DNA of 63,236 nt, counting the filler, from Dimorphilus gyrociliatus (Eukaryota; Animalia; Annelida): assembly GCA_904063045.1 (NCBI GenBank). It is 4 parts of 4 records of this genome, joined end to end, with 100 filler letters (N's around TTAATTAATTAA, not from the genome) between each part and the next. Parts side by side here need not be neighbours in the genome. Positions count along the whole stretch, not along the records: positions 9,450 to 28,230 come from CAJFCJ010000222.1; 3 more parts are not named here. One strand, given 5' to 3'. Positions 1 through 26,125 of the stretch are shown piece after piece. Every line of letters starts with the position of its first letter. The stretch's first letter is position 1. The position numbers and the translations under genes are program-made. Under the pieces are notes generated by a model. The model saw nothing but the letters and a program-made list of their open reading frames with translations. It was not told the origin of the DNA and searched no databases.

Positions 1-684
1 CCAATCTTCTCCATTGTCGGCAATCTCTTCAGTAATTTTACCAGACACTAAATAGAATAGATTATTGTAGAGCAACTCAATTCTTGGTGATATCATTGGT
101 TTAAGAAATCTTGTCTTTTTGATGATATTTTCCCTAGTCTGCCCTCCTAAACTCCAGATTGTATCGTGTCTACTTATACCAGTTTTATGAGCAAGAAAAT
201 CTCTTAGAGTGTAATCATGATATCTATAACCAGACCAAGCTGTGAATCCTGACCATAAATCTTTAACTTTTGTATCAATACTTAAACTTAAAAAGAAAAA
301 GAGATGGATTTTGGCCTAAATTCGTTAATTTTTGTTTAATAAATCTCTTTATTCTTACTGTTTTTCCGTTAATAACTTCATTATTAATTGAGCTGTAAAA
401 CTTTTAGTTATTGAACCAATAGGAAATTTAGTATTTGGTGTTACAGGCTCATTTCTTCTTATATTAGCCATACCATAACCTTTAGTTAAAATAATACTTC
501 CATTTCGAACAACAGCTAAATTAGCTCCAACAAAATTTCTACATTTTACTAAGCCACCAACATATTCATCTATTTTTGTGACCACCTGTGCATTGGTTAG
601 TCTCCATGAAATACTTGAACTATAAATAACTGTAATAGCTGAAAAGAACAAAAACAAAATAATTTGCTTTCCTACCATTTTCAA
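1..684 (-). CDS. Secreted beta-lactamase/penicillin-binding-protein family serine hydrolase (5' part; runs off the window; intron ~292-354)
   Basis: ORF 355-684 has a hydrophobic N-terminus, GANLAVVRNG...KGYG and the SxxK motif FPIGSITKSFTA. The next exon translates to TLRDFLAHKTGISRHD...LLYNN (LLxHxxG and YxN motifs), with small frameshifts. Confidence 0.85.
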
Positions 685-839
685 ATGTCTGTTTAACCTT
701 TAGAACAAATTTGAGCGTATTTATTGCTTTAGAAAATTATCTTATCAAAATTGACGTTAATCTTAAAAGATAAACTGGAACTGTCTTATCAATATTTCTC
801 ATATGATTAGACTGATCCCCTAAAACTTTACCTTTAGAT

Positions 840-1010
840 TATCTTTTGAGTCATATAATGGCAGTTTTCCCAGAAAAATTTCTTAAAATCTGATTCTTGG
901 AAATATCTCTTAAGGTGACCCCACAAATGCTGCAATGGAAAGGCCTCAGTCTGAGGAGGCTACCTTGTCAATCGTAGCAATTCCTTCTGCTTAGTAAGTA
1001 TGCTTAATAT
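840..1010 (-). mobile_element. Decayed Tc1/mariner transposase C-terminal remnant
   Basis: Minus strand gives R*PPQTEAFPLQHLWGHLKRYF, resembling WPPQSPDLNPIEHLWGHLKR. Confidence 0.4.
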
Positions 1011-1559
1011 ATTTTTCAACGGGTAAAAGTTGCAAACTGCTATTAAAACATCACCAGCTGGTTTATTACAATTTGCAAAATTCTTTTCAAACTAAACAAA
1101 TTTTATCTTGCAATTTTTAATCTCTCTTTTATTAAATTTTTACAATGATTGGTAGCATATGTCGATTGTTTAACCATAATAAACTCAAGAGTTTTCAATG
1201 CTTCAACCATGTTTGGAACACAGGTCACATAAAACATTGGTAAATTCATTAAATTTAAATTAAAAAGTGATGAGAGAGGAGAGATGGTGAAAGAGAAAGA
1301 AAGAGAGAGGTAGTAAAATTTCAAATTTAAATAAATTTTTTGCAGCATTACCTTATTTATTAAGTAAGATTGGAATGATTTATAAATTTTGTTGTAATTT
1401 TACATTTGATTAATAAATATCATTGATACTGTCTATAAATCTTACTTGATTATTAAACTTTCATTAGATTCTATTAAGCCATCAAAAATTTATTTTAGTG
1501 TAAGTATTTATTGGAATTTGTAAACATTTAAGAAGCTGTTTCGAGGATGAGGACTCTGA

Positions 1560-1697
1560 GCAGAGATTCAGTAAGAAGGTGGGTGGCTATCTAACATCTA
1601 AGGGTTAGGGCTATTCAAAAAGGTTAGGCAAAAACAAGGGCTGGGTTAGGGTTAGGATAAAACCATACATTTATGGCCGTTTTCTACCACATCCGTG
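1560..1697 (-). repeat. MITE-like repeat with GGGTTAGGGTTAGG tract; inverted homolog of 2196-2401
   Basis: The reverse complement (GTAGAAAACGGCCATAAATGTATGGTTTTATCCTAACCCTAACCCAGCCCTTG...) aligns by eye with GACAGAAAACGTCCCCAAATGAATGGTTTAACCCTAACCCTAACCTAGCCCTTG at 2202. Confidence 0.55.
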
Positions 1698-1804
1698 AAA
1701 AACTCTCTTTAATAAAATTAGGAAATTATCATTAAAAAAAGTGTATGAATCATTCCAATTGTACTTAATAAATAGAGATTTTATCAATGACTCAAAATGT
1801 CTAA

Positions 1805-2161
1805 ATGGTATATTTAATATTAAGTTTTCTTCATAGTTCTGTTGAAATTGTTTTTGTCACATATCTTAATCACAGAGATTATTCATCAAATAAAGAATTT
1901 CTTCTATATCAAGAAATGAGAAACATTCTTCAATGTAAAGTATGCTTATGTCAACTTGCTAATATTCTTATTTTGCCATGCAGTCATGTTGTGTGTTGTC
2001 AGGAATGTCTGAGCAATCTTCCTAAACCTCAATGCCCATTATGTCGTGAATATACTCGAGGATATGTTATAACTAAAACAGATCTGCAAATGCTAAACTT
2101 GGACTTTGAAAGTAATTTATTAATGGATAAGGGTGATGGGAAATTTATTGGAAGTGAATGA
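1805..2161 (+). CDS. RING-HC (IAP/MDM-like C3HC4) zinc-finger protein or terminal exon
   Basis: CKVCLCQLANILILPCSHVVCCQECLSNLPKPQCPLCR fits the C3HC4 RING pattern. Confidence 0.75.
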   Translation: MVYLILSFLHSSVEIVFVTYLNHRDYSSNKEFLLYQEMRNILQCKVCLCQLANILILPCSHVVCCQECLSNLPKPQCPLCREYTRGYVITKTDLQMLNLDFESNLLMDKGDGKFIGSE

Positions 2162-2195
2162 AACAATTGTATCATTTATAAAGAAAAAGTACAAG

Positions 2196-2401
2196 GAATA
2201 CGACAGAAAACGTCCCCAAATGAATGGTTTAACCCTAACCCTAACCTAGCCCTTGCCACTTCCTAACCTTTATGATTACCCCTAAGCTTTAGATGGAACC
2301 CCTCTAACTATAAATTAAAAGCTACTTTACCCCTCCTAACCATTTTTAAATCCGAAATGTTACTTTCAAAAATCTCACTTGGGGACATTTTCTGTCGGCC
2401 C
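2196..2401 (+). mobile_element. MITE (~200 bp) related to the MULE TIR family of this genome
   Basis: Inverted repeats CGACAGAAAACGTCCCCAA (2201) and TTGGGGACATTTTCTGTCG (to 2397). The start GAATACGACAGAAAACG is identical to the left end of the MULE at 45444. No clear TSD. Confidence 0.65.
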
Positions 2402-2919
2402 CGTTGTCTTTCATGAACTTGATATAATAAGCAAATCCAGTAAAGAGTAGAATATCCTTTCCTTTCTAACTTCCTCCAGTTGTAATTTCAATTTTTTGTG
2501 ATATCAGAGCAAATATTACATTTGAAAACAAATACATCTATTGTGAAAATATAATTATTCTAACAGAATTAATTCATAAATTTGATATAAAAATTGGGCT
2601 ATCAGAATTAATGGTGTCCGGATTTTTTAGTCAATTACTTAATGTTTATATTCCTTATAGAAAAGTAAATGATTAAATGATAAAAGATAAGAGTAGTTTA
2701 TCAGAAATGTTGTAGTTTTTTTTAAAGATAATAAGAAACAAAATTAGATAATAGTGTTCACACCAATTAAAATTTAATTATTCAATACGTGACTTTTATA
2801 AACTCTGTCAGGAATTTGCCCTGACACAATTTCTAGTTTAAATAAAAATGTAATTCTAGCGAAATTGTTGAAAATTTATCACGTGACTTTGCTAAATACA
2901 TTACAATAACTACTTTTGT

Positions 2920-3403
2920 ATTATATATTGCAGTATTACTGTTTGGTATAGCCGTTTCAGATTTGGTTAGATTGATTGATGTAATGCATTTGGAGGATGT
3001 TTAATTCCAGCTTTTTATACTTATAATAATTAATAGTAAAATTGTAATTACATTGGTAAAAGTTAATAATCAAAGAGCCCAATTAAATGAACTCAAAGTT
3101 GAAATGACATCTGATAAAAAGTTTAATCAAATGACTATAACTTTACTTTTTTTTATCTCTATTTACTATATAATATCTTCATCACCTTGGCACATTACTA
3201 ACGTGATTTACTACTTTAATGACACATTTGTATCTTTAAGATATAATGATATAAAAGCTGTAAGATATTCGAGATTACTTGGTCCGCTAATGCTCAGTAA
3301 AGTTTTGTATGGGTGCCATCAAGCTACTAAATTTATTAAAAATTGTAACTGTATTGAAAAAATCTCCTCTTCTGAAACATTCTTTATCACTTTTGCTTAT
3401 TAA
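2920..3403 (+). pseudogene. Rhodopsin-family GPCR fragment
   Basis: IAVLLFGIAVSDL (TM2-like), then LIIINSKIVITLVKVNNQRAQL...MTITLLFFISIYYIISSSPW (TM5-ICL3-TM6-like); stops and missing segments. Confidence 0.5.
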
Positions 3404-11454: not shown

Positions 11455-11486
11455 NNNNNNNNNNNNNNNNNNNNNNNNNNNNNNNN
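11455..11486. other. Assembly gap (32 N)
   Basis: N run. Confidence 0.99.
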
Positions 11487-12368
11487 AAAGCATTTAATTA
11501 AACATCAACTTACATAAAAAACTCATCAACTAACTATCAAAGAAAATTTTCAGCAAACATCAACTAAAGCATCTGGGGATATATCCCACCTTACCTTTCC
11601 AGGCATTGGTTCTCGGAGGTCTAAAGTTTAACTCTCCTGATTAGAAAGGCTATAAGCCCTTCTCTTCAGGATAGCTTGAAGATACCTGGCTGTTGAGGCC
11701 AGGACCAAATAACACCGAGGACTATCGGCATCCCGCTCCCCTCCTAGGAGCACCCGACTGTGGTATCACGATCGAGGTTTTTGTTAAGTATTGAGGAGTA
11801 TATTTCTATACTCCTCCTATCCTCTTCGTATCCAGGACAATCAAGAAGTAGGTGATAGATATCTTCTCTACTCCTCTCTTGCACACTGGACACTTAGAGT
11901 AAAATTCACTGGATACCTTTCCTAGCATGACTAGGCGAGGTACAAAGTGGAATGCTCCTGCCCTCAACTTGAGGAGAGCATACCATCCAGCGCCTCTGTA
12001 CCTCAAGGATGCTCTGGGCACGTTCACATCAGCGACTCGCCACCTATCTCTCATCCTTGAGATAACGCTAGAGTGTCTAGCGATTTTCCTACTCTCCAGA
12101 CTCCGCTTGGCAATAGAAGGAGCTTGCCTTGCCTCACTGTCCAGTGCAGTAGGCGCATACCTTTTGAGCCATCGGGTTGTACGCGTCACCCATGTTGTTT
12201 TCTTTGCTTTTATAGGGTTCAATGAAGCTACTCATGTATGTACGTGAGTATCTCCACTTCCTATAGGCTCTGGTTCGCATCCTGGCAGCGAACACATCGA
12301 CCATCTTCATGCATAAGTCCTTATACATTGATAGTCTATTGAACATCTTGAGACATTCATTGCCATTG

Positions 12369-13256
12369 CTACTCCATTGTCCATGATCCTCTGTAGTTCT
12401 TCTGCATCGAGTGGAGTTCATACCAATCATTTCTACCACCATAGGTTACGATTGGCATGAGCACTCCTCTGAGGACCCGTACCTTGTGGTACATTCCAAT
12501 GGAGGGATTGCGCAAAGTGTTTGACACTGGGAGCAGTGCCAATCGACCCTGCTCCACTCTCCTGTCTAGATGAGCATCGTCACCCAGGTCATTGGATATC
12601 TGGATACCAAGGTAGGTATAGGACTGCACCATCGGAATCACTTGATTACCATAGTGTATGTCACCATCTACCAGTGGCTGGGACGCTCCTACTATCATGT
12701 AGCCACTCTTGGCGACATTGACACCCATCCCCCATTTGATACACCACTGTTGTAGTTTAATAAGGTTGAATGCCATATCCTCAGCGCTTTCTGCTAGCAG
12801 TACGGTGTCGTCGGCGAAGAGCAGTCCAGGTACTCTTTCAGCCAACCCATCTACCTCTACACCTCTCATTCCTGAGAAAATGTCATTAATATAGAGGTTG
12901 AATAGGAGGGGAGAGAGTGGGCAGCCTTGTCTCAACCCCACAGTATAGTCGAAGCTATCTGTCACGGAGTCCCCTATTCGTACTCTACACTGCACATTCC
13001 TGTACAGTCTCCTAACAAATGCGCGGTAGCATGCAGAGACTCCAATATCTGCCATCTTACCAAGCAGTTTATCGTGAGGCACCATGTCATAGGCTTTCTT
13101 AAAGTCTATGAATACTACAAAGGTGTCCTTACCTTTTATTTTTCTTCTCTTTAGAAGCTCTGTGAGTGTGGATGCTTGTGTTACGCATTCCTCGAGACTT
13201 CTGAATCCTGCCTGGTATCTACCTAGGAGATTATTCTCTTCCACCTCTTGTCTCAT
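12369..13256 (-). CDS. LINE ORF2 reverse transcriptase core (fragment)
   Basis: QAGFRSLEECVTQ, VVFIDFKKAYDMV, GLRQGCPLSPLLFNLYINDI, GLLFADDTVLL. Confidence 0.95.
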   Translation of the reverse strand: MRQEVEENNLLGRYQAGFRSLEECVTQASTLTELLKRRKIKGKDTFVVFIDFKKAYDMVPHDKLLGKMADIGVSACYRAFVRRLYRNVQCRVRIGDSVTDSFDYTVGLRQGCPLSPLLFNLYINDIFSGMRGVEVDGLAERVPGLLFADDTVLLAESAEDMAFNLIKLQQWCIKWGMGVNVAKSGYMIVGASQPLVDGDIHYGNQVIPMVQSYTYLGIQISNDLGDDAHLDRRVEQGRLALLPVSNTLRNPSIGMYHKVRVLRGVLMPIVTYGGRNDWYELHSMQKNYRGSWTME

Positions 13257-13934
13257 TTTTATTTCTACTATCTTAGTAGCAATCTTGAGCTGGGAAGAGA
13301 TTAAGGAGATCCCCTGTAGTTGGAGGGATTGCTCCTCTCTCCTTTCTTGAAGATAGGAACAATGATGCTCACATTGTCCCTAGAGGGAATGTCTTGGTTA
13401 ATCAGTTCATTCATCTGAGAAACCATTGCTTTAGCCATTAAGCTACTTCCCTCTCTATCACCCTCCAGGAGCTTGTAGAACTCTGATGGTATCTCGTCTG
13501 CTCCTGGCGCCTTGTTTCGCGGTGTTACTTTGGTTGCTAAACGTACTTCAGGCCATTTTACGGTGATAGATCCTTGTATTACTGGGATGTCTCTATATTG
13601 ACCTTGTGAGAGTGACTTGAAGTAGCTGTACCAGGAGTTTAGGATTTGCTCCTTGGTGACTGCTAGCTTATTAGTCTGTGGATCTCTGATAGCAGCATTA
13701 CTGACTGCACCTCTTACAGCTCCTCTGAGGGAGTTGATCCACCTCCACATGTCCCGAGACCTGTTGGCAGTCGTAAGGTCTATGCCTTTCTGGACATACC
13801 TATCCCAGTTTTTTTTCGACAGGCTAGTATGAGTTTTTTGGATCTAGTCCATAGTTCCTCATACTTAGCTTTGTCTTCTTCAGTGTTCAGTCCTGATGCT
13901 CTCAGCCTCCTTCGCTGGTCAATGCATCTGATTG

Positions 13935-15026
13935 TCACCTTGTCGAGGATAACTGACCTCTTCTCCTTTTGAAGTCAGAGAGGTTGAGGTTATTCAGCAT
14001 CCTCTTTGCAGTGGGCACCATCTCTGGTTCATCTGTCCAGTGCTTATGATGGATGATCCTTTCCCACTGCTGGGCCATTCTTTTCCTGCTTACTATACTC
14101 TTTGGCTGTTCAGCAGGTACTTGCCGCCCTGTGATCTTGATTAGAACTGGCTTATGATCAGACAGATCCCAGTTCTCGACCACTTGTTGACTAACAGGGC
14201 TTTCGCCTTTAGTCTGGACGAGGAAGTCTATCGGAAATCCTCGTCTGTTCCCGTCGACTCTCCATCGAGTCCTCCTCGTCATGGTGAGAATTTCAGGGGT
14301 AGCAAGGGGTATTTGCTCCGCTAATAACCGCTTCTGCACAGTCTCAGGCTTGGAGTTCCAGTCCCCTACAGTGACTACCTCATCAAACCGATCCTTGTGC
14401 TTCCTCAGCAACGCACCAAGTCTCTTGTATGCCTGCTTGCGGTTATCGAGTCCGTGAGGAATGTATACATTGATGCACAGTACCTTCTTAGGTCTTGTGT
14501 CAAGAGCAACTGCTATGAAATTGCTATCTACATGGATTAGGGTGGACTGGTTCCTAATCCGGTTCCTGACAGCAAGGAAGAGTCCTCGCTTGCCCAGATC
14601 ATCCTCTTTGTCTGAGGAGTATATGGTGTAGCCACCTACTTTAGGTGTTCTGCCTGCCCATAGAGTCTCCTGTATGGCTACAATGTCAGGCTTCTCGCGC
14701 GACAAGTATAGCCATATTTCAGACAATTTGGTTCGGAAGCCATTGATGTTATAGCTAAGGATCTTGAGAGTTTCAATCTCTTGCTTACAACATTGTATGG
14801 TCTTACTCCGACCCATGGTGGACTCTTTGATCCACCAATTCTCTCTTCTAGCTAAGGCCTTTAGCCTATCATTGCTACAAAGAGGCTGTTTGTTGACTAT
14901 TACATCTAGTCTTTGGCAACCATTTGGTTGCCTTATTCGCTTCACCTTGGCCTGCTTGAGGCCGAAGGTGTTTTCAAGCTTGGAGCTCACCAGGTCCCTT
15001 TGACCATGGGAGCTCCCCACAAACAA
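13935..15026 (-). CDS. LINE apurinic endonuclease-like domain preceded by an RRM-like segment
   Basis: LKILSYNINGFRTK, DIVAIQETLW, INVYIP, VGDWNS, IDFLV, SDHKPV are exo-endo-phos motifs. Confidence 0.9.
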   Translation of the reverse strand: MFVGSSHGQRDLVSSKLENTFGLKQAKVKRIRQPNGCQRLDVIVNKQPLCSNDRLKALARRENWWIKESTMGRSKTIQCCKQEIETLKILSYNINGFRTKLSEIWLYLSREKPDIVAIQETLWAGRTPKVGGYTIYSSDKEDDLGKRGLFLAVRNRIRNQSTLIHVDSNFIAVALDTRPKKVLCINVYIPHGLDNRKQAYKRLGALLRKHKDRFDEVVTVGDWNSKPETVQKRLLAEQIPLATPEILTMTRRTRWRVDGNRRGFPIDFLVQTKGESPVSQQVVENWDLSDHKPVLIKITGRQVPAEQPKSIVSRKRMAQQWERIIHHKHWTDEPEMVPTAKRMLNNLNLSDFKRRRGQLSSTR

Positions 15027-15087
15027 TACTTTCTTCCAGTCTCTAGGCTCTTATTCCCAGCCCCTGGTAAGCCAGGCTGGCGGCCAT

Positions 15088-16070
15088 TCATGATCGTCGG
15101 GCTGAGTCAACCTTCTCAGCCCGGTAAAAGAACCTTTCTGGGTTCTCTAGAACCCCTTCAGGGCTGGCCTTATCCAACACCCTGGAGAATGCTATGTTTG
15201 GGCCTCTTTGGCCCATCAAATAGACATTGTGGCTCCTCGCCCTTCGGAGCCACTCTTCGAGCTGGGCCCCTTTTGGGTGCCTCAGCATAACGAAGCCTTC
15301 ATTGACCAGAGCAGCATAAACCCTCTTTATTGTGAGGTTAGCTGCTCTGATCTCCAGCTTGTCCATCCATGTCCTCACCTGACAGGTCATGGATATTCTT
15401 ATTTTCTTTCTTTAGAATATCCATCACCTGTTCAGGTGAGGTAAAGACTGGTACCTGCAGATATGCATACTTCCAGTATGACTTCATATCTGAAGGCACC
15501 AGGCCCTTCTTTGTCATTTTTTTAGTATTCTTTGCACCTATTACTTTTTTACTTTGGTTTTTACTATTTTTTTTTATCTCTCTTTTTTTTATTTCCTATT
15601 TTTTTTACTTTTTTTTTTATTATTTTTTTTTCATTTTTTTTCATTTCTTTTTTTACGCTGCAATTTATTTTAGTATTTTTTTTTGTACTATTTTTCATGA
15701 GGAAGGAGTCTAGATCACTTATGAAGTCATCTAGACTCATTTCCTTCTTTATTTTTTTTATGGTTGTCCTAGAAGAGGAGGGACTTTTCCTCTTCATAGG
15801 TTTTATAGTCTTATGATTTTTTTCCTCATTTTTTTTATTATCAACATTTTTTACTTTGTTTTTTTTATTATAAATTTTTTTTTCTTTATTTTTTTTATTA
15901 TTAATAGTTTTTTTTTCCTTTTTTTTAATTTTATCCTGTTTTACTTTCAGGACCTCCAAAGCTTTCTGAAGGCGGCTAATGTTAAACATTAGCTCTTTTT
16001 CTCTCGTTTCATTGTACTTTTTTTTGTTTTTTAGTAAGATATTCTTCCTAGATTGGATTACCCCTTGCAT
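15088..16070 (-). CDS. Putative LINE ORF1: Lys-rich coiled-coil N-terminus plus a GC-richer C-terminal part (two frameshifts)
   Basis: MQGVIQSRK... (ATG 16070) joins through a single-base shift in the A-run near 15566 to MTKKGLVPSDMKSYWKYAYLQVP, then +1 near 15405 to the ORF at 15088-15390. Confidence 0.5.
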
Positions 16071-16099
16071 TGCATTACTCAAAAAATTTTTTTTTAAAA

Positions 16100-17205
16100 T
16101 AAAAGCATTTAATAAACACATAACCTACATAAAAACTCACCACTACTGCAAAAAAAAAAAAAAAAAAAAATAAACATACAATAAAAAACTCACCACTACT
16201 GCTAAGAAAAAGTTTCAGCTACACATCTACTAAAGCATCTGGGGATATATCCCACCTTACCTTCCAGGCATTGGTTCTCGGAGGTCTTGAGGAATGGCTA
16301 TTACCACTCCCCACAGTTTGCGGACAGGTCTGCTCCCTTCAGAGCTAGCACCCACCCATTCCACATACACCTTGCGGTGCCTGCAGCGCGACACCTGTGC
16401 ATCTCGAGTTACGGCAACAGCTGCACAGGCCACCGAGGACTATCGGCATCCCGTTCCCCTCCTAGGAACACCTCCATCCAGCTACCCGAAGACAGAGGTT
16501 TTTAGTTGTTGGTTTGACTCTTAGCTACTCATAATCACTGCTTACTGGACTTAGGTCTCTGCCAGTTATACTCAACATCTACACTTCAATCAGCTTGCCT
16601 ATCTTCATGGCAAGGAGCTTAATCATTGCATCTCCATTCCTAACTAGTTCTGGCGAGCGGGTCCAGCTAGGCCATCCAGATACCTCTTCTATTGCCAGAC
16701 TCCGCTATGATAACTGCCTCTACATGGTACTCCTGCCGACCACTTCTACTTTGTTTGCGGCGCTGACCTAGGCAGGGTCTGGGGCGTTCCTTTGCTTGGG
16801 CAATCCCCGGCCGTGGGTCGTGAGGACTTCGACCCAGTCGTGCAGATACCTTCCCATCCTGAGTGATCCTACCGTCCCTGTGTCAGGGGTGTCTACTCAT
16901 ACCCAACCACAGGCAGGCTCACTGACTTCCCTGTCTCTGCCCCATACACAAGCCTTCACTAAGCTCTTCAGCTCATCTGCCTTCGAGTCCCTGCATGGTA
17001 CTCTGCACACCCCACCTCACTACTAGTCACGCATCCTACTACGCTAGTTTTATAGTATCTTACCAAGGAGTATCCTCACAGTATGACTCAGACCCAGATA
17101 GATTGTGGGTATCTGGGGGTGCCTAGTATCCATGCTTGCACTGTCATTAGCCGTCTCCCGACGTTACCAAGACGAACCACGTGGAGGTTACAGTGCTGTC
17201 GTCTC
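16100..17205 (-). mobile_element. Non-autonomous (SINE/SIDE-like) element: 5' HDV-like ribozyme, ~650-nt non-coding body, 3' tail shared with the adjacent LINE
   Basis: Blocks 16431-16472 vs 11713-11754 (40/42 identical) and 16229-16287 vs 11563-11622 (one indel), plus a similar U-rich tail ending ...TTAAATGCTTT; no intact ORF. Confidence 0.7.
17138..17205 (-). ncRNA. HDV-like (CPEB3/R2-type) self-cleaving ribozyme
   Basis: P1 GAGACGA/UCGUCUU with G1.U wobble; P2 GCACUGU/ACAGUGC; P3 ACC/GGU; L3 UCCACGU; P1.1 CC/GG; P4 CGUC-GGGA-GACG; J4/2 GCUAAU containing the catalytic C (plus-strand position 17150). Confidence 0.88.
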
Positions 17206-17259
17206 CACCATGCGTTCATTTTATCTCTCTAGATAAGCTTTCAATTTCTACAATGTGTA

Positions 17260-17516
17260 GGATAGAACGACGGTAAGGACTGCGCCGTGCCTCAAATGCT
17301 CGCTTGCGCTCGCACCTTACAGCAGGCCGTCCATGTCGTGTCGTTTTCACGTCCGCCTTCCGACCTTGGGCCCGGTTTCTAGCTTAGAGGCTTTCAGCTA
17401 TACTCCGGTAGACGTAGCTCCGCGACATGCCCGTCCGGACAATCGCTCCACCAGTGGTCTCATAGGTCCTTCCTTTCGTACTACTCCCTACTCCCCGCAG
17501 TCGTCTGTAGGTAGGA

Positions 17517-17563
<47 letters not shown>

Positions 17564-18148
17564 ATTAGTGGGTGAACAATCCAACACTTCGGCGCTCCTG
17601 CACGCCGATGGTAGGAAGAGCCGACATCGAAGAATCAAAAAGCCGCGTCGCTTTCTGCGCTCGACGGCCACAAGCCAGTTATCCCTGCGGTAACTTTTCT
17701 GTCACCCACCTCACAACTGCGGTGTCAAGGTGGGATCCCTAGGCCTGGGTTTCCCCGCACGTACTCATCATCGTACGCTCAAGCACTCTCAAGCCCTTAT
17801 GCTCCACGCGGGTTTTCCCGTCCCGCTGCGAGTACCTTCGGTCAGCTGCGTTCTGCTCCTGCAGCTGTGCCGCCCCAGCCAAACAGTCCATCTAGCATCC
17901 ATCCCCAAGGGTGTGCCATGAGCTCCGACGCGTAGTGGTCTTTCACTTCCGCGTTGCCGCTCCCACCTCCCTACATCACGTCGCAGCTCACCGCTCTGCT
18001 ACACTACTGTGAAGCTCAACAGGGTCTTCTTTCCCCGCCTACATCGCCAAGCCCGTTCCCTTGGCACGTGGGTTCGCTAGTCTGCAGGTAGGGACAGTGG
18101 GAATCTCGTCTTTCCATTCATGCGCGTCACCAATTAAGTGACGAGGCG

Positions 18149-18187
<39 letters not shown>

Positions 18188-19898
18188 GACCCGCGCTTAA
18201 GAGAGTCTCCTCTCCTTCACGTAACGAGCACCGGGCAGAAATCACTTCGTATCCCTTCACGAAGCTATGTTTTTATTAAACAGTCAGATTCCCCATGCCA
18301 CCTTGAGTTCCATAAGAACCAACACTTCTCCCGAAGTTACGCATCCATTTTGCCGAATTCCCTTACCTGCGTTCAACATACGCCAGAGGCTTCTCACCTT
18401 GGAGACCTGTCGCGGTTTAAGTACGGTCCCGGGGCCCGCTCGCGCGTCCTTTTCACTGCTGGGCCCGGCGGCCGCAGGGTCGCCCCTTGCCAGCGGCCCG
18501 CGCCCTTCGCTGACTGACTCATCTCCACGCGCGCGCCGCACGCACCAGAGCCGGATGCTCTGCGCGGCCGGACGGCCCATGTCGAACGCCCGATCTCCCG
18601 TCGCCGCTCGGCCCCGAGGGATAGGACTCTTAACCTATTTCTCTTTCGCTACAGACCGTGCTCCGTCGCTTAGCACCGCCTCACTCCCTTCTGATCTACA
18701 TCGCCAGGGAAAACCTTCTCCTCCTCGGCCTTCGCCATTCTCAGACGAATTACAACTACTGCCACCAAGATAAGCGCTGCCGGCACCTCCACCGCACCTC
18801 GCAGTGCGCCTTCCACAGTCCCGGCACGCCCCCCTACCCGCGGGCGCGCATCGGTCGACGCGTCAGCACCGTCAATTTTAGGGCCAGCTGAATTCCGTAG
18901 GTACGTTGTAACACGTTTCTTACCGGCTGCCGACTTTCATGGCCACCGCCCTACCGTCTTCATTCACCTACCGCCTTCCCTCTCTGCCACGCCGTTCGGT
19001 ACCTTATCGCGCCGCCAGGTTGAATCCTCTTCGCCAGTCCTGCTTACCAAAACAAGCCCACTACGCTCGTCCAAGTCCGCGCTGCGTATGCCACGCCGCG
19101 CTGAGCACGTTCGGAGTTCGTTCGTCGCCTTAAGGCTAAATGATCCTAGTTCTACCGCACTCCTCTTCCACTCGCGCGCTGTCCTGAGAGACATTTCGGG
19201 GGGAACCAGCTACCAGACTGTTCGATTGGTCTTTCGCCCCTACACCCAGTTGACGTCAAAGAGTTGCATATCATTACGACTCGCCACCTCCAGCGCATTT
19301 TCATCCGCCTTCGTAGCCACCAGGCATAGTTCACCAGTCTATCGGGTCTTAACCACGCCTCTCCACCGCTCTCGCGCGCGTCCGGGGCTCTCTCCCTTCC
19401 ACTCGCTGCGTAGTTAAACTCCTTGGTCCGTGTTTCAAGACGGGACCGACTCTGTCGGCTCCACATGCAATTTCACTTTTTCATCATATTCTGTCTTCGG
19501 TCACCCTACTAATACGCTATCGGTGTCCACCTGTATTTAGCCTTAGATGCGCACTGCCACCTCTTCACGCTGCACTACCGAGCAACGCTACTCACTTCCT
19601 AGCGCGGCGTCCCTACGGGGCTAACACCCTCTCAGGCCGGCCCTTCAAGGCTCGCTCGGGCCGCCGCTTCGCTGACATCTCGCCGGGGCGATTACACCGT
19701 CGGGCTCCTTCCTCTTCGCTCGCCGCTACTGGGGAAATCCTCGTTAGTTTCTTCTCCTCCCTTTACTCATATGCTTAAATCAGAGGGGTTCTCGTCACTA
19801 CTGACCATTCAGGCACGCGCCGTCCTCGCTGCCGCTCCGGCCTCGCTTCCTGCCGCGCCCTTCCTCGCCAGTGGACCCAAACGATCCCTTGCATGTGG
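17260..19898 (-). rRNA. Microsporidian LSU rRNA with the 5.8S-equivalent fused at the 5' end (~2.6 kb)
   Basis: Conserved LSU motifs on the minus strand (GATTTAAGCATAT, TGACTCTCTTAAGGTAGCCAAA, GCTGGGTTTAGACCGTCGTGAGACAGGTTAG). 5' start ACATGCAAGGGATCGTTTGG with no ITS2. Both ends approximate. Confidence 0.95.
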
Positions 19899-19919
19899 CT
19901 CTTCTATCTCCATTCCTCG
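19899..19919 (-). other. Very short single ITS (~20 nt)
   Basis: Lies between the SSU 3' end (..GTTGGATCA) and the LSU 5' motif. Confidence 0.7.
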
Positions 19920-21269
19920 CTGATCCAACGACAGGTTCTCCTACCGTTGCCTTGTTACGACTTGTATCAGATCTAGAACCCTGCGCTCACTCACTCGTTG
20001 TTCGTTCGCACCTGATTCCATCTTCGATAGCGACGGGCGGTGTGTACAAAGAACAGGGACTCATTCATCGCTCCATACTGAGACAGCGATTACTAGCAAT
20101 TCCTCGTTCCTGCGCCCCTTCCAGGGCACATTCCCTCTCGATCGCATTTCTCTCTCCTTCCTTCCTCCTGCGACCACTGTAGTGCGCGTGCAGCCCAGTC
20201 CATCTAAGGGCATCACTGACCTGTTCTTGACCCCTCCTTCCTGCGCTTGGCGCGCCAGTCACTCCGGTCGAGGGTCTCACTAATTACCAGACTTAACCCA
20301 AGGATCACTCCATTTGTCGTTAACGGCCATGCACCACTTTCCGACCTATCGCGTACCACGCTCATCCGGTCGTCGGCACTGGTAAGCTGTCCCGCGTTGA
20401 GTCAAATTAAGCCGCACACTCCACTCCTTGTGGTGTTCTTCCGTCAATTTCCTTTAAATTTATCGCTTGCGCGCGTACTCTCCCCGTAGCTCTACTCTAG
20501 ATTTCTCGTCCCCGTCACACTCGTAACAGGGCGTAAGCATCGTTAACTGCTGGAACTACTACGGTATCTAATCGTATTCGATACTCCAGCCTACGTCCTT
20601 GATCATCGGACTCGCCCCTGGCCAGCGCTTTCGCCTCAGTTTCTCCTAGGCAGGTCATCGAATTTCACCTCTAGCTGCCTAATAGACTGGCCCCTGGCCG
20701 CTCCTCATCCTCTACCGTTCTGGGACATTCCACCCCTTGATCGGATGTTTTATACACCAGTTGGCTAGGCAGACTACGGACCTTTTAATCGCAGCAAAAA
20801 TCATAGACACCCCTGGAGCTGGTATTACCGCGGATGCTGGCACCAGACTTGACCTCCAGTTACTAGCATCTTGTTTACAAATCCTTCTAAACAAACGTTT
20901 CTTCACTACCGCCCTGCTTGCAGGCTTCGGTAAGTTTCGTGCCTGCTGCCGTCCTTGGACCTGGTAGCCGTCTCTCAGGCTCCCTCTCCGGAATCAAACC
21001 CTAATTCCCCGTACCCGTATTCGTCTAAATAGGCCTTTACCCTACTTACTAACTGATGGGCTGACTTCTTACTCTCCGCCGCTCCGCTATACCTGTAGCC
21101 CACTGGCTACACGCCTTGCGTATTCCCCTCAGTTTCCCGAGGTTGTCCGCCCGCGCAGATCAAATCAAAGTCCGTTACTGAGCCGTACGCCGCTCCCCCG
21201 AAGGTTCGCTTACACATGCATGGCTAAATCTGTGAAACTAGCGTCCACGTCAGACAGAATCAATCTGAT
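19920..21269 (-). rRNA. Microsporidian SSU (16S-sized, ~1350 nt) rRNA
   Basis: 5' ATCAGATTGATTCTGTCTGACGTGG; GTGCCAGCATCCGCGGTAATACC; AAACTGTCCC-region motifs and 3' AAGTCGTAACAAGG...GGATCA; reduced length typical of Microsporidia. Confidence 0.96.
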
Positions 21270-21781
21270 TCTCTTCGTAGTTTACACTACACTCTCCGCA
21301 CTCCGAGCTCCTCACCTTTCACCAAGGCCGTCCCGCTCACTACACCTATTACCTTCACTTTTACTGCATATTCGTCAATTTAGTATGACACTCGAAAGAG
21401 TTTTTGAAAAGTACTTTTTTCCTCCTCATTATAGGCGAATTTTTTAGTTACATCTGTCTGCGATTCACTACGAGTCATCCCAAATTTCCGAATCCGAGTT
21501 TTCGGGTATGAGGTCAGCACCACTACTGATCAGAACACTCTATATACGCACGATCTAAAAGCTGTCACAAAATTGACAGCATTTTTTGACACAATATGAC
21601 ACATATCGCGCACAAAATAATACACATATGTAGGTAGTGTATAGTAGATGTTGTGTCGGTTGTGTATTTACATTTGTGTAATATGAGGTGGTATACTTAG
21701 GTAGATACGTTTTAAAACATAAAAATTTTCAAGCAAGTAGGGGTTAGAATAATTTTAAAAAATCACAGAATATATCATGTA

Positions 21782-23263
21782 CAGTAGGGGAAAAAAAATG
21801 AAAAAAAAATAATTAATGAAAAGTCGTATTTTACGATGTAATTAAAGCAATGTTTATATTATGTTTTCATTTATATATGGATAAGCTATTCAAATTATTT
21901 TTCTCTTGGTTCTAGTATTGTTTTTTAATCAAAACATCATAAAAATATCAACGAATTGCTCCTGATGGGGAAAAAAAATGAAAAATTTTAAATTAATAAG
22001 AAATATGGTGTCCTTTATTTCTAATACATTCTATTATTCTTTTATTCATTGAAAGACATAGATTTTTGCACAAATCACTGCTTATATTATTCCAAAGCTC
22101 CATAATTTTTGACTTTAATTCATCGCCAGTAGAGAAGGATAAACCTCTTAATTTGTACTTGAGAATAGACCAAAGGTTTTCAATAGGATTCAAATCAGGA
22201 GACTGAGAGGGCCAATCTAACACATCAATATCGTTTGTCCTAAAATACTCCTTTGTCAGTCGACTTGTGTGTTTTGGATCATTATCCTGTTGAAATTTTA
22301 ACCTGTTTACACCTAGTTTTTCTTTTATAAAGGTAAATTAGTAGCTAGTATATGTACGTACTGTACTGCATCCATTATTCCATCAACAAAATGTAACCTT
22401 CCTACACCTTCATAGCTAAATGATCCCCAAACCATCAATTTCTTAAATCCAAATTTTTTAGTAAAGTTTAGAGGTGTCTTATCAGAGCTTTCTTTCCATA
22501 CTTTGAACCGACCAGAGTCATTATAGTAAGAAAATGATGTTTCATCGCTAAAAAAACATCATTCCAGTAATTTTGACCAAGAAACAACCACTTTTTGTTA
22601 CCTCCAATCTTCTCTTTATATGAATGGGTTTGAGAAAAGGTTTTTTTACTGGGATAACAGCTTTAAACCCATTTTTATTTAAAAAGTTTCTTATTGTTCT
22701 GGGATTCACAGCCAAACCTGTATTATTTTCTATATTTCTAGCTATTTTAGGACTAGAAATCAAACTATCATTTTTGATCAAAGACTTAATCATTGATAAA
22801 TGCTTTGATTTAAGAACTTTGGGCCTGCCAGAACCAAGTTTTCTATCAGTATTATTATGCTGTTGAAATTTAGTGACTATTCTACTGATAGTCGATACAC
22901 TAACACCTGTTTTTATCAAAATTTCTTTATAAGTAAACCCCTCATTTCTTAGTGTAAGAACCTGACCCTTGACTACAGAAGAATAGTGATGTTTCATAAG
23001 GTCATATATACGAAGTTTTTTCATATGATTATGGAGGGAAATTTGACTTTTTTTAAATTTTTCATTTTTTTTCCCATCAGGAGCAATTCGTTGATATTTT
23101 TATGATGTTTTGATTAAAAAACAATACTAGAACAAGGAGAAAAATTTATTTGAATAGCTTATCCATATATAAATGAAAACATAATATAAATATGCTTTAA
23201 TTACATCGTAAAATATGACTTTTCATTCAATTATTTTTTTTTCATTTTTTTTTTCCCCTACTG
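21782..23263 (-). mobile_element. Tc1-family DNA transposon (DD34E) with ~210-bp TIRs and TA TSD; frameshifted transposase
   Basis: TA|CAGTAGGGGAAAA ... TTTTCCCCTACTG|TA. The transposase has RKLGSGRPK, FSDETSF, FQQDNDPKHT and WPSQSPDLNPIENLW, with 34 residues between the second D and E. Confidence 0.93.
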
Positions 23264-24283: not shown

Positions 24284-26125
24284 TGTTGTAGCATAAAGTG
24301 TCCGGGTTGCAAAAAGTGTCCGGCCTTAAATAGCATTTATTTATAAAAATAAAGTGATTTGTAAACTTTTTTATTTTTTTTTCAATTATAAATTTACTAA
24401 AAAGAGTAAGAGCTTCGTGACAAAAAGTGTCCTGGTAATTTAATAGAGGTCTCCTTTAATAAATTAATAGGAAAAAATGGATAAGTGTCAATGGCTGACA
24501 AAAAGTGTCCGGGGTATTTTTTTAGAGATTTTATCAACATTATAAGGTAAATTTAATAGATATTATGATTTTAATTAAAAATATAGTTTTTCTGAATTTT
24601 TTAGATAATTTTCTTCACACAGCGTATTGAAGTTTGTTTTGTCTCTTCAGAGTTTTGACTTTTAATAATGATTCTTTCACCATTTATTTCTTCAACTACA
24701 TAAATATCATCAAAATAAAGTGACTCAAGGGCCCTTCTTCTTATAGTTGGGCTATATGGCTTAACCAGTAACACTCTATCCCCTATTCTTATTTGCTGAG
24801 ATGATCTAATGGAAAATTCTCTGCGATATGTTTCTACATAGTTTAATAAACTTAATCTTGCTTCATCAGAGAAAGTTGTTGTATTCATATTATTCAACAG
24901 CTCGTTATCGAATCCTTTAAATAACAGAAATAGTTTGATTCCTGTGCTTCTATGAGCTGTATTATTGTAATAATATACAATCCTATCAATATGATTATGC
25001 CAATCAAATTGGTTAAAGCCAAAAGATTTTCTTATTCTCGATTTAATTGTACGATTAAAACGCTCAACTTGCCCTTGTGATTGGGGATGATATGGTCTGC
25101 CATGTGTAGAAATTACATTAAATCTGGTTAAAATACTCTCTACTCTATTGTTTCTGAATTCACCTCCATTATCACTATGAAAATTTCTCACGTTCCTTCT
25201 TTATAAAAATGTTGTTCTAGAATAGCAGAAAAGTCTCTGAGTTCTTATTATTAGCCGTGTAAACCCATCCAAATTTAGTAAAACTATTAATCATTGTGAA
25301 AACGTATTTCAATCCATTGTTATCTTGGGAATATATACTGAGGTCAATAGTATCAACTATCAACCTTTCCCTTGGGTATGATGGTATTATAGGTGTAATA
25401 GATTCAACAAAAGCTGGAGGCGTCTCCCTTAAACAATTTTCACATCTTTCTAAAAGACTATTAACATCATTTATGGTAATCCCCACATATCTTTGTCTTA
25501 CTCTATTAAACACAACTCTTCCCCGGGCATGATCAACGTTATGCTTCTCCATTATTATTTCTTTTCTTTTATTTATTTCTGATCTTAGAATTATGTCTTT
25601 CTCTATCCTATCATCAACCATCTTCAATAGTCCATTTCTTAACACTAGGTTTTTTACACTTTCTACGTAACACTCTCTTTTGGGAATCGTCAAAGGTCAT
25701 AGGATATGTTTTATTAGATAGATAAATAATTATATTATTTTTTTCTTCATCGTTCTCAATTAGTAAATTTGTAGACATGGGATACTTTATAAGTAAATTT
25801 TTATCTAAAAAATTAAGAAAAACTATATTTTTAATTAAAATCATAATATCTATTAAATTTACCTTATAATGTTGATAAAATCTCTAAAAAAATACCCCGG
25901 ACACTTTTTGTCAGCCATTGACACTTATCCATTTTTTCCTATTAATTTATTAAAGGAGACCTCTATTAAATTACCAGGACACTTTTTGTCACGAAGCTCT
26001 TACTCTTTTTAGTAAATTTATAATTGAAAAAAAAATAAAAAAGTTTACAAATCACTTTATTTTTATAAATAAATGCTATTTAAGGCCGGACACTTTTTGC
26101 AACCCGGACACTTTTTGTTGCAACA
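24284..26125 (-). mobile_element. Ginger2/TDD-like DNA transposon with gypsy-type integrase, ~320-bp TIRs, TGT...ACA ends and 5-bp TSD (TATTT)
   Basis: The left and right arms are near-perfect reverse complements with internal AAAAAGTGTCC(G)G repeats. Flanks are TATTT at 24279-24283 and 26126-26130. ORFs give HHCC (HNVDH...CENC), LIVDTIDL, HSDNGGEF and HPQSQGQVERFN (DD35E). No RT or RNaseH. Confidence 0.85.

Follow-up and report, generated by a model that had tools for sequence, protein, structure and literature searches.

A predicted HDV-like self-cleaving ribozyme at the head of a non-coding retroelement behind a microsporidian LSU rRNA gene

In our opinion, a promoterless, non-coding retroelement some 1.04 kb long (element A below) most probably has an HDV-like ribozyme of the active type as its first 68 nt. 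The element lies 61 nt past the LSU rRNA gene of a microsporidian, in the same orientation as that gene. The co-transcript with the rDNA would be cut by the ribozyme, and the RNA of the element would then be copied in trans by the enzyme of a LINE. Read from the DNA itself, this interpretation has before it the predicted fold, its position, the agreement of the predicted cut site with the 5' ends of the element, and a 3' module that the element has in common with the LINE. The features concerned are listed in Table 1; positions count along the window, that is, along the whole stretch of 63,236 nt that was analysed.

Table 1. Positions of the ribozyme, its structural parts, the rDNA and the retroelements in the window
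Feature	Position	Strand	Description or basis
HDV-like self-cleaving ribozyme, predicted	17138..17205	minus	sequence reading, Rfam alignments, descriptor, copies, independent contig
P1	GAGACGA 17205-17199 / UCGUCUU 17175-17169		7 bp, first pair a G17205.U17169 wobble
J1/2	CA		between P1 and P2 strands
P2	GCACUGU 17196-17190 / ACAGUGC 17144-17138		7 Watson-Crick bp
P3	ACC 17188-17186 / GGU 17178-17176		3 bp
L3	17185-17179		UCCACGU
P1.1	GG 17168-17167 / CC 17184-17183		GG able to pair with the CC of L3
P4	CGUC 17163-17160 / GACG 17155-17152		4 bp, GGGA cap (GNRA loop)
J4/2	GCUAAUG		putative catalytic C at 17150
SSU rRNA gene, microsporidian	19918..21270	minus	Rfam RF02542, 1178 bits, full length
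LSU rRNA gene, short microsporidian type without separate 5.8S	17267..19811	minus	RF02543, 1493 bits, model 1-3401
rDNA 3' flank, 61 nt, putative 3' ETS	17206..17266	minus	flank upstream of the insertion
Element A, ribozyme-headed non-coding non-autonomous retroelement, about 1.04 kb	16150..17205	minus	ends in LINE-like 3' module and T run
Tandem 3' fragment, heavily 5'-truncated second copy of the element 3' end with A/T tail	16081..16149	minus	repeat of the terminal module
AT-rich stretch, ~25% GC, with lysine-rich ORF 15564-16121	15531..16080	minus	LINE 5' part or spacer
APE+RT non-LTR retrotransposon (LINE), frame broken into several ORFs	11487..15530	minus	5' limit approximate
LINE 3' module common with element A	11487..11760	minus

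The original prediction was a reading of the minus strand as a complete HDV-like fold. Re-reading that strand directly gave exactly the same sequence, and every element of the fold is indeed there. The strands follow one another in the order P1-P2-P3-L3-P3'-P1'-P4-P4'-P2', which is the nested double pseudoknot of the class. The G that opens P1 in the Rfam alignments is the same G17205 that stands opposite U17169 in our reading. The C at 17150 is aligned to the consensus C of GGCnAAUG in both RF00094 and RF02682 and so takes the place of C75. Judged by its sequence, 17205-17138 has every structural feature that the HDV-like class demands, and the cut is predicted between 17206 and 17205 (minus strand).

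A permissive Rfam search with 251 nt returned two matches in total, both to HDV families and both full-length: RF02682, in the register first proposed (25.9 bits, E 0.0046), and RF00094, in the identical register (24.7 bits, E 0.094). The matched cores include the catalytic C, GGCUAAUG and CCUCC-CGUGG. Both scores lie under the gathering cut-offs of the families (44 bits for RF02682 and 50 bits for RF00094), and for this reason we do not file the ribozyme under either of these subfamilies. Further, Rfam scores alone would be non-significant at the scale of the whole window, and in the two models P2 and P1.1 do not count towards the score. We therefore wrote a descriptor in which the complete double pseudoknot is required (a 7-bp P1, a P2 of at least 5 bp, a 3-bp P3, L3 as TYCNCGN, GG, and GCNAA). 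Within the 18.8-kb piece it has a single match, at 17205-17138. When it was run on 3000 block shuffles with local composition preserved, there were 0 matches; since the descriptor was composed after the sequence had been seen, 0/3000 is to be taken as a bound and not as a formal probability. Of the checks that had been suggested for this fold, the one by Rfam gave full-length alignments to both HDV models below their cut-offs, and the one by descriptor gave a unique match.

The minimum free energy fold, computed with nested pairs only, recovers P2, P3 and P4 at a stability equal to that of shuffles (z 0.2), as must be expected given that P1 is pseudoknotted and the pseudoknot is outside the model. 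An error of assembly is not the source of the sequence, since contigs from a short-read DNA run of another study (X1 below) are identical to it over 17128-17205, with 0 differences; raw data contradicting the sequence had been named beforehand as a reason to abandon the prediction, and the independent run does the opposite. Between 17140 and 15000, other ribozyme families had no match.

It is important to consider in whose rDNA the ribozyme is found. The assembly holds two organisms, a main eukaryote and a microsporidian. The rDNA of the main eukaryote comprises SSU, 5.8S and a 3.9-kb LSU (C5 at about 622-632 kb, C164 and C223; multi-megabase contigs). The microsporidian rDNA lies on three short contigs, namely C222, which is the one in the window, C184 and C137. 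Marine metatranscriptomes are among the sequencing runs that contain the stretch. Because Rfam ends the LSU at 17267, the cut site falls 61 nt past the modelled LSU end; an earlier estimate of ~55 nt was right in placing the ribozyme downstream of a microsporidian LSU and somewhat short in the distance. On the promoter side, upstream of the rDNA, fragments of a Tc1/mariner-type transposase (PF01498) and of a retroviral-type integrase (rve, Integrase_H2C2) occupy 22548-23024 and 24601-25693 on the minus strand, so the rDNA unit sits in transposon-rich surroundings.

The 61-nt flank between the LSU and the ribozyme is common to all three microsporidian rDNA contigs. The ~18 nt directly upstream of the ribozyme differ wholesale between C222 and C184 on the one hand and C137 on the other, with an identical ribozyme behind them. 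The flank also contains a hairpin, in which 17236-17231 pairs with 17226-17221 around an AGAG loop (TTATCT/AGAG/AGATAA, minus strand). In C137 the same hairpin reads TTGTCT/AGAG/AGACAG, so that pairing is kept through a double change from A-T to G-C. A loop of the AGNN type is reminiscent of the RNase III (Rnt1) signals in the 3' ETS of yeast; the stem here is short.

The DNA that begins with the ribozyme has, in our view, the properties of a mobile element. No sense-strand ORF of at least 60 aa was found in element A, which is GC-rich (~50%), and four other copies, full or nearly full, have 96.6-97.4% identity to the copy in the window. Its 3' module resembles that of the LINE in two blocks, 16472-16431 corresponding to 11754-11713 (95%) and 16287-16166 to 11622-11500 (87%), and both elements terminate in the motif AAATGCTTTTATTTT followed by an A/T tail. 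Behind the tails of element A and of the LINE stand tandem 5'-truncated copies of the terminal module (C222, C137, C184 and C181), and some bodies of element A carry the LINE-type version of the tail (on C184 and on the metatranscriptome contig X9). In the 78-Mb assembly, copies of the 3' module occur on C222, C184, C137 and C181 only. Contig X9 spans 16204-17017 and ends short of the ribozyme; in two raw RNA runs there were 0 parasite reads. What one would ask of a non-autonomous partner of a LINE is thus found in element A: it is non-coding, it has its 3' module in common with the LINE at 87-95% identity, and it bears signs of retrotransposition, by which we mean copies truncated at the 5' end, 3' fragments in tandem, and junctions that fall at G1.

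The LINE starts ~0.6 kb beyond element A. Its reverse transcriptase (RT; PF00078) is encoded within 12369-13256, and upstream of the RT there is an APE-type endonuclease domain (PF03372, within 13935-15026). The best relatives of this RT are RTs of microsporidian and zoopagomycete LINEs at ~40% identity, and we therefore assign the LINE to the lineage of the parasite and not to that of the host. The closest of them, again at ~40% identity, is ELQ74836.1, a non-LTR RT on GCA_000316135.1, which from the accession series we take to be Trachipleistophora hominis; other matches are from Zancudomyces, Smittium, Nucleospora, Dictyocoela and Amphiamblys. Solved structures did not place the LINE in a clade, as the RTs of R2 and LINE-1 match about equally and the APE domain matches only ExoIII, and that weakly. 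The copies of the LINE have at least three different 3' flanks. The one copy away from rDNA, on C181, lies beside a Tc1-like gene. The copies are frameshifted, which makes current mobility doubtful.

A separate observation concerns the place where the GC-rich sequence of the LINE begins. A hairpin of ~75 nt at 15370-15444 (both strands; -48.8 kcal/mol, z -8.5) overlaps the ATG of the ORF 15088-15390 and attracts several weak matches to Rfam miRNA families.

No ribozyme of its own was found in the readable copies of the LINE. This test of the LINE start is limited by masking with N, since the 5' 3.5 kb of the C181 copy (70172-73711) and the AT-rich stretch of C184 (26003-26595) are masked; in the window, 11455-11486 is masked as well. 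Where it can be read, in C137, the AT-rich stretch is contiguous with the LINE at 95.5% identity, and in the window (15531..16080) it has no Pfam match. Loci of LINE relatives in Trachipleistophora hominis, Nucleospora cyclopteri and Dictyocoela and on an ENA contig, mostly fragments, contained no HDV-like motif by the descriptor, and Rfam found no HDV-like ribozyme in the loci from T. hominis and ENA. The ENA contig (L075, 8.3 kb) holds the second-best relative of the RT and carries two LINEs head to tail, with APE and RT twice. Such tandem LINEs resemble the arrays near the microsporidian rDNA; the HDV-like motif was not found in L075.

It is possible to argue that the ribozyme heads one autonomous element of 5.7 kb (17205 to 11487), with what we call element A as its 5' UTR. 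On that view, the 3'-like module inside the long element would be a duplication, at which reverse transcription sometimes starts alternatively to give the short form. We consider this unlikely, and yet it deserves a careful answer, because in each of the three rDNA contigs element A and the LINE are neighbours on the same strand and because the LINE has neither a ribozyme nor an evident promoter of its own. Also, the sequence upstream of the LINE is equal in C222 and C137 despite the differing 3' flanks of the LINE in these contigs. Element A, however, closes with a complete terminal module and an A/T tail, and a copy in C184 (21876 to 20834) is followed by 3' fragments and not by the LINE. 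The fall in GC from ~50% to ~25% between element A and the ORFs of the LINE likewise speaks for two elements. Hence we continue to treat element A as a non-coding unit with the LINE as its separate partner.

The junctions of further copies bear directly on where the RNA of element A begins. When the whole assembly was scanned for the core pattern, 5 ribozyme copies with an intact core came up and no diverged ones; one decayed copy is present besides. Because the copies are nearly identical, there is no covariation within the family. The ribozyme is identical at 68/68 nt in four copies whose bodies differ by ~3%; its conservation over that of the element body is non-significant, with 0-1 variable columns against about 2.8 expected. 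In C184 a full element A starts exactly at G17205 without microhomology, preceded by a LINE tail and an unrelated 96-nt fragment of element A with its end at 16962. On C137 a copy broken at 17045 comes first, and a full copy from G17205 follows it, with 1 nt (one G) ambiguous. A further copy in C184, adjoining the rDNA, is 5'-truncated by 6 nt; 17 nt of filler precede it, and it starts with base 7 of the ribozyme. One contig of the independent run X1 has 17156 directly after flank base 17206 and represents a copy without 49 nt (17157-17205), and the unitigs of that run break at 17205/17206.

DNA copies that start at the cut base are expected if the RNA template began there, and that two breakpoints in an element of 1 kb should both hit the same given base by chance is very unlikely. 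Copies beginning at the cleavage base are also the pattern known from the 5' junctions of R2 (PMC3774820). As genome copies starting at G1 appear to record the cut site, activity in vivo seems likely to us. The original prediction held that the cut releases the RNA of the downstream retroelement. According to the genomic junctions, the predicted cut is indeed the 5' end of a retroelement, and it is in the identity of that RNA that we differ, since the cut would head element A and not the LINE.

No empty target site turned up, so that any target-site duplication is hypothetical and the exact point of insertion only presumed. In the three rDNA units the position of the element is the same and there are two upstream junction sequences; these units may, however, be segmental duplicates, and the LINE copy on C181 is not next to rDNA. 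The family is linked to rDNA; strict site specificity is possible but would go beyond this.

The presence of the ribozyme at the same place in 3/3 assembled microsporidian rDNA units, with none that lacks it, may also suggest a fixed part of the rDNA, i.e. a device for processing or termination at the 3' ETS of the pre-rRNA, followed by nothing but ordinary intergenic spacer. We regard this as very improbable. The ribozyme together with the 1-kb body is found also behind a LINE tail with no LSU end before it (C184, 21876). Extra copies start at the base of the cut site, and a 5'-truncated copy lies on the same flank. The body terminates, moreover, in the 3' module of a LINE, and truncated fragments stand there in tandem. 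That the fold is an inactive relic or a chance look-alike, which no longer cleaves or never did, is hardly credible to us: Rfam scores under the cut-offs and the broken state of the associated LINE would fit it, but it has against it the shuffles without a single descriptor match, the 68 identical positions in four copies with diverged bodies, and exact junctions at the cut base, which require RNA that begins there.

We thus return to the reading of element A as a ribozyme-headed retroelement, and the following sequence of events may be proposed. Transcription running on from the rRNA gene, presumably by Pol I, would yield a co-transcript that includes element A. The ribozyme would cut it at 17206|17205; by the chemistry of the class, the element RNA would begin at G17205 with a 5'-OH, and the product on the rRNA side would end in a 2',3'-cyclic phosphate. 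With its LINE-type 3' module and A/T tail, the RNA of element A could then be reverse-transcribed in trans by the LINE enzyme through target-primed reverse transcription. Reinsertion would give the head-to-tail arrays that adjoin the rDNA.

From animals (R2, RTE, Baggins) and from trypanosomatids (L1Tc), non-LTR retroelements are known that HDV-like ribozymes release from co-transcripts with the host. The best comparison for the 5' end is R2, a promoterless, sense-oriented non-LTR element of rDNA whose 5' HDV-like ribozyme cuts at the junction between element and rDNA, with variable 5' junctions and some 5' truncations (PMC3774820, PMC3414825, PMC6765202). Element A is like the R2 elements of insects and other animals in having the ribozyme at its 5' end, the predicted cut at the rDNA junction, the sense orientation and 5'-truncated copies. 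The differences are no less clear: R2 has a restriction-like endonuclease and a site inside the 28S gene, whereas here we have an APE-type LINE, a site ~61 nt past the LSU and a microsporidian host. As the site is past the 3' end of the LSU, the rRNA gene is uninterrupted. Because both the type of endonuclease and the insertion site differ, element A and its LINE are not R2, even though the 5' processing would be R2-like.

For the partnership with a LINE, the relevant comparison is with the R2 SIDEs and with NARTc/L1Tc of Trypanosoma cruzi, where non-coding elements combine a 5' HDV-like ribozyme with the 3' end of an autonomous LINE (PMC3414825, PMC3185411, PMC3383444). Like element A, R2 SIDEs and NARTc are presumably mobilised by the LINE with the matching 3' end. 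Unlike in these systems, element A has in common with the readable copies of its LINE only the 3' module and neither the ribozyme nor the body. L1Tc and NARTc are, further, dispersed and have an internal promoter, whereas the family of element A is found in arrays linked to rDNA and on one other contig.

In sequence, the ribozyme has the same core and register as RF02682 (HDV-F-prausnitzii), RF00094 (HDV_ribozyme) and the ribozymes of metagenomic tRNA arrays, with the CCUCC-CGUGG of P3/L3, GG-AAC following P1, and GGCUAAUG, which includes the catalytic C. It differs from the two Rfam families in a short P4 (4 bp with a GNRA loop) and in its context, a eukaryotic retroelement in place of a viral genome or tRNA array. 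The HDV core pattern was found in 52 metagenomic contigs, and 26/52 pass a relaxed descriptor; their P1, P2 and P4 sequences differ, and no relative of element A is among these 52 cores. As for the surroundings of such cores, in the 14 metagenome loci that were checked, matches that come after a tRNA-like 3' end (e.g. L022, L025, L033 and L040) belong to dense arrays of tRNAs, a tmRNA being present in some of them, and from the tRNA to the start of the ribozyme it is no more than a few tens of nt. Such loci look like the tRNA-linked HDV-like ribozymes of phages.

The original prediction knew of no such ribozyme in Microsporidia. Full-text literature searches agree with this: no paper was found on HDV-like ribozymes in Microsporidia, nor on non-LTR elements tied to microsporidian rDNA. 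In a 2024 review, the rDNA-borne mobile elements listed for Microsporidia are the MITEs of Nosema only (PMC10946416).

In our opinion, the interest of the system lies in the combination of an APE-type LINE with a non-coding partner headed by a ribozyme, in which it is unlike R2, and in a natural candidate ribozyme of a compact 68 nt. Being placed behind the LSU and not inside it, the element can borrow the transcription of the rDNA without inactivating the gene. Microsporidia are a lineage with a pared-down RNA-processing machinery, and the finding raises the question of how they finish the 3' end of their pre-rRNA with so reduced an apparatus. One may speculate, and we attach little probability to it, that cutting the microsporidian pre-rRNA at its 3' end has become the regular task of the element's ribozyme, with every Pol I transcript that reads through being severed ~61 nt past the LSU. 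If this were true, only a short 3' ETS tail would be left for trimming, and the ribozyme would replace or supplement a cut of the RNase III type.
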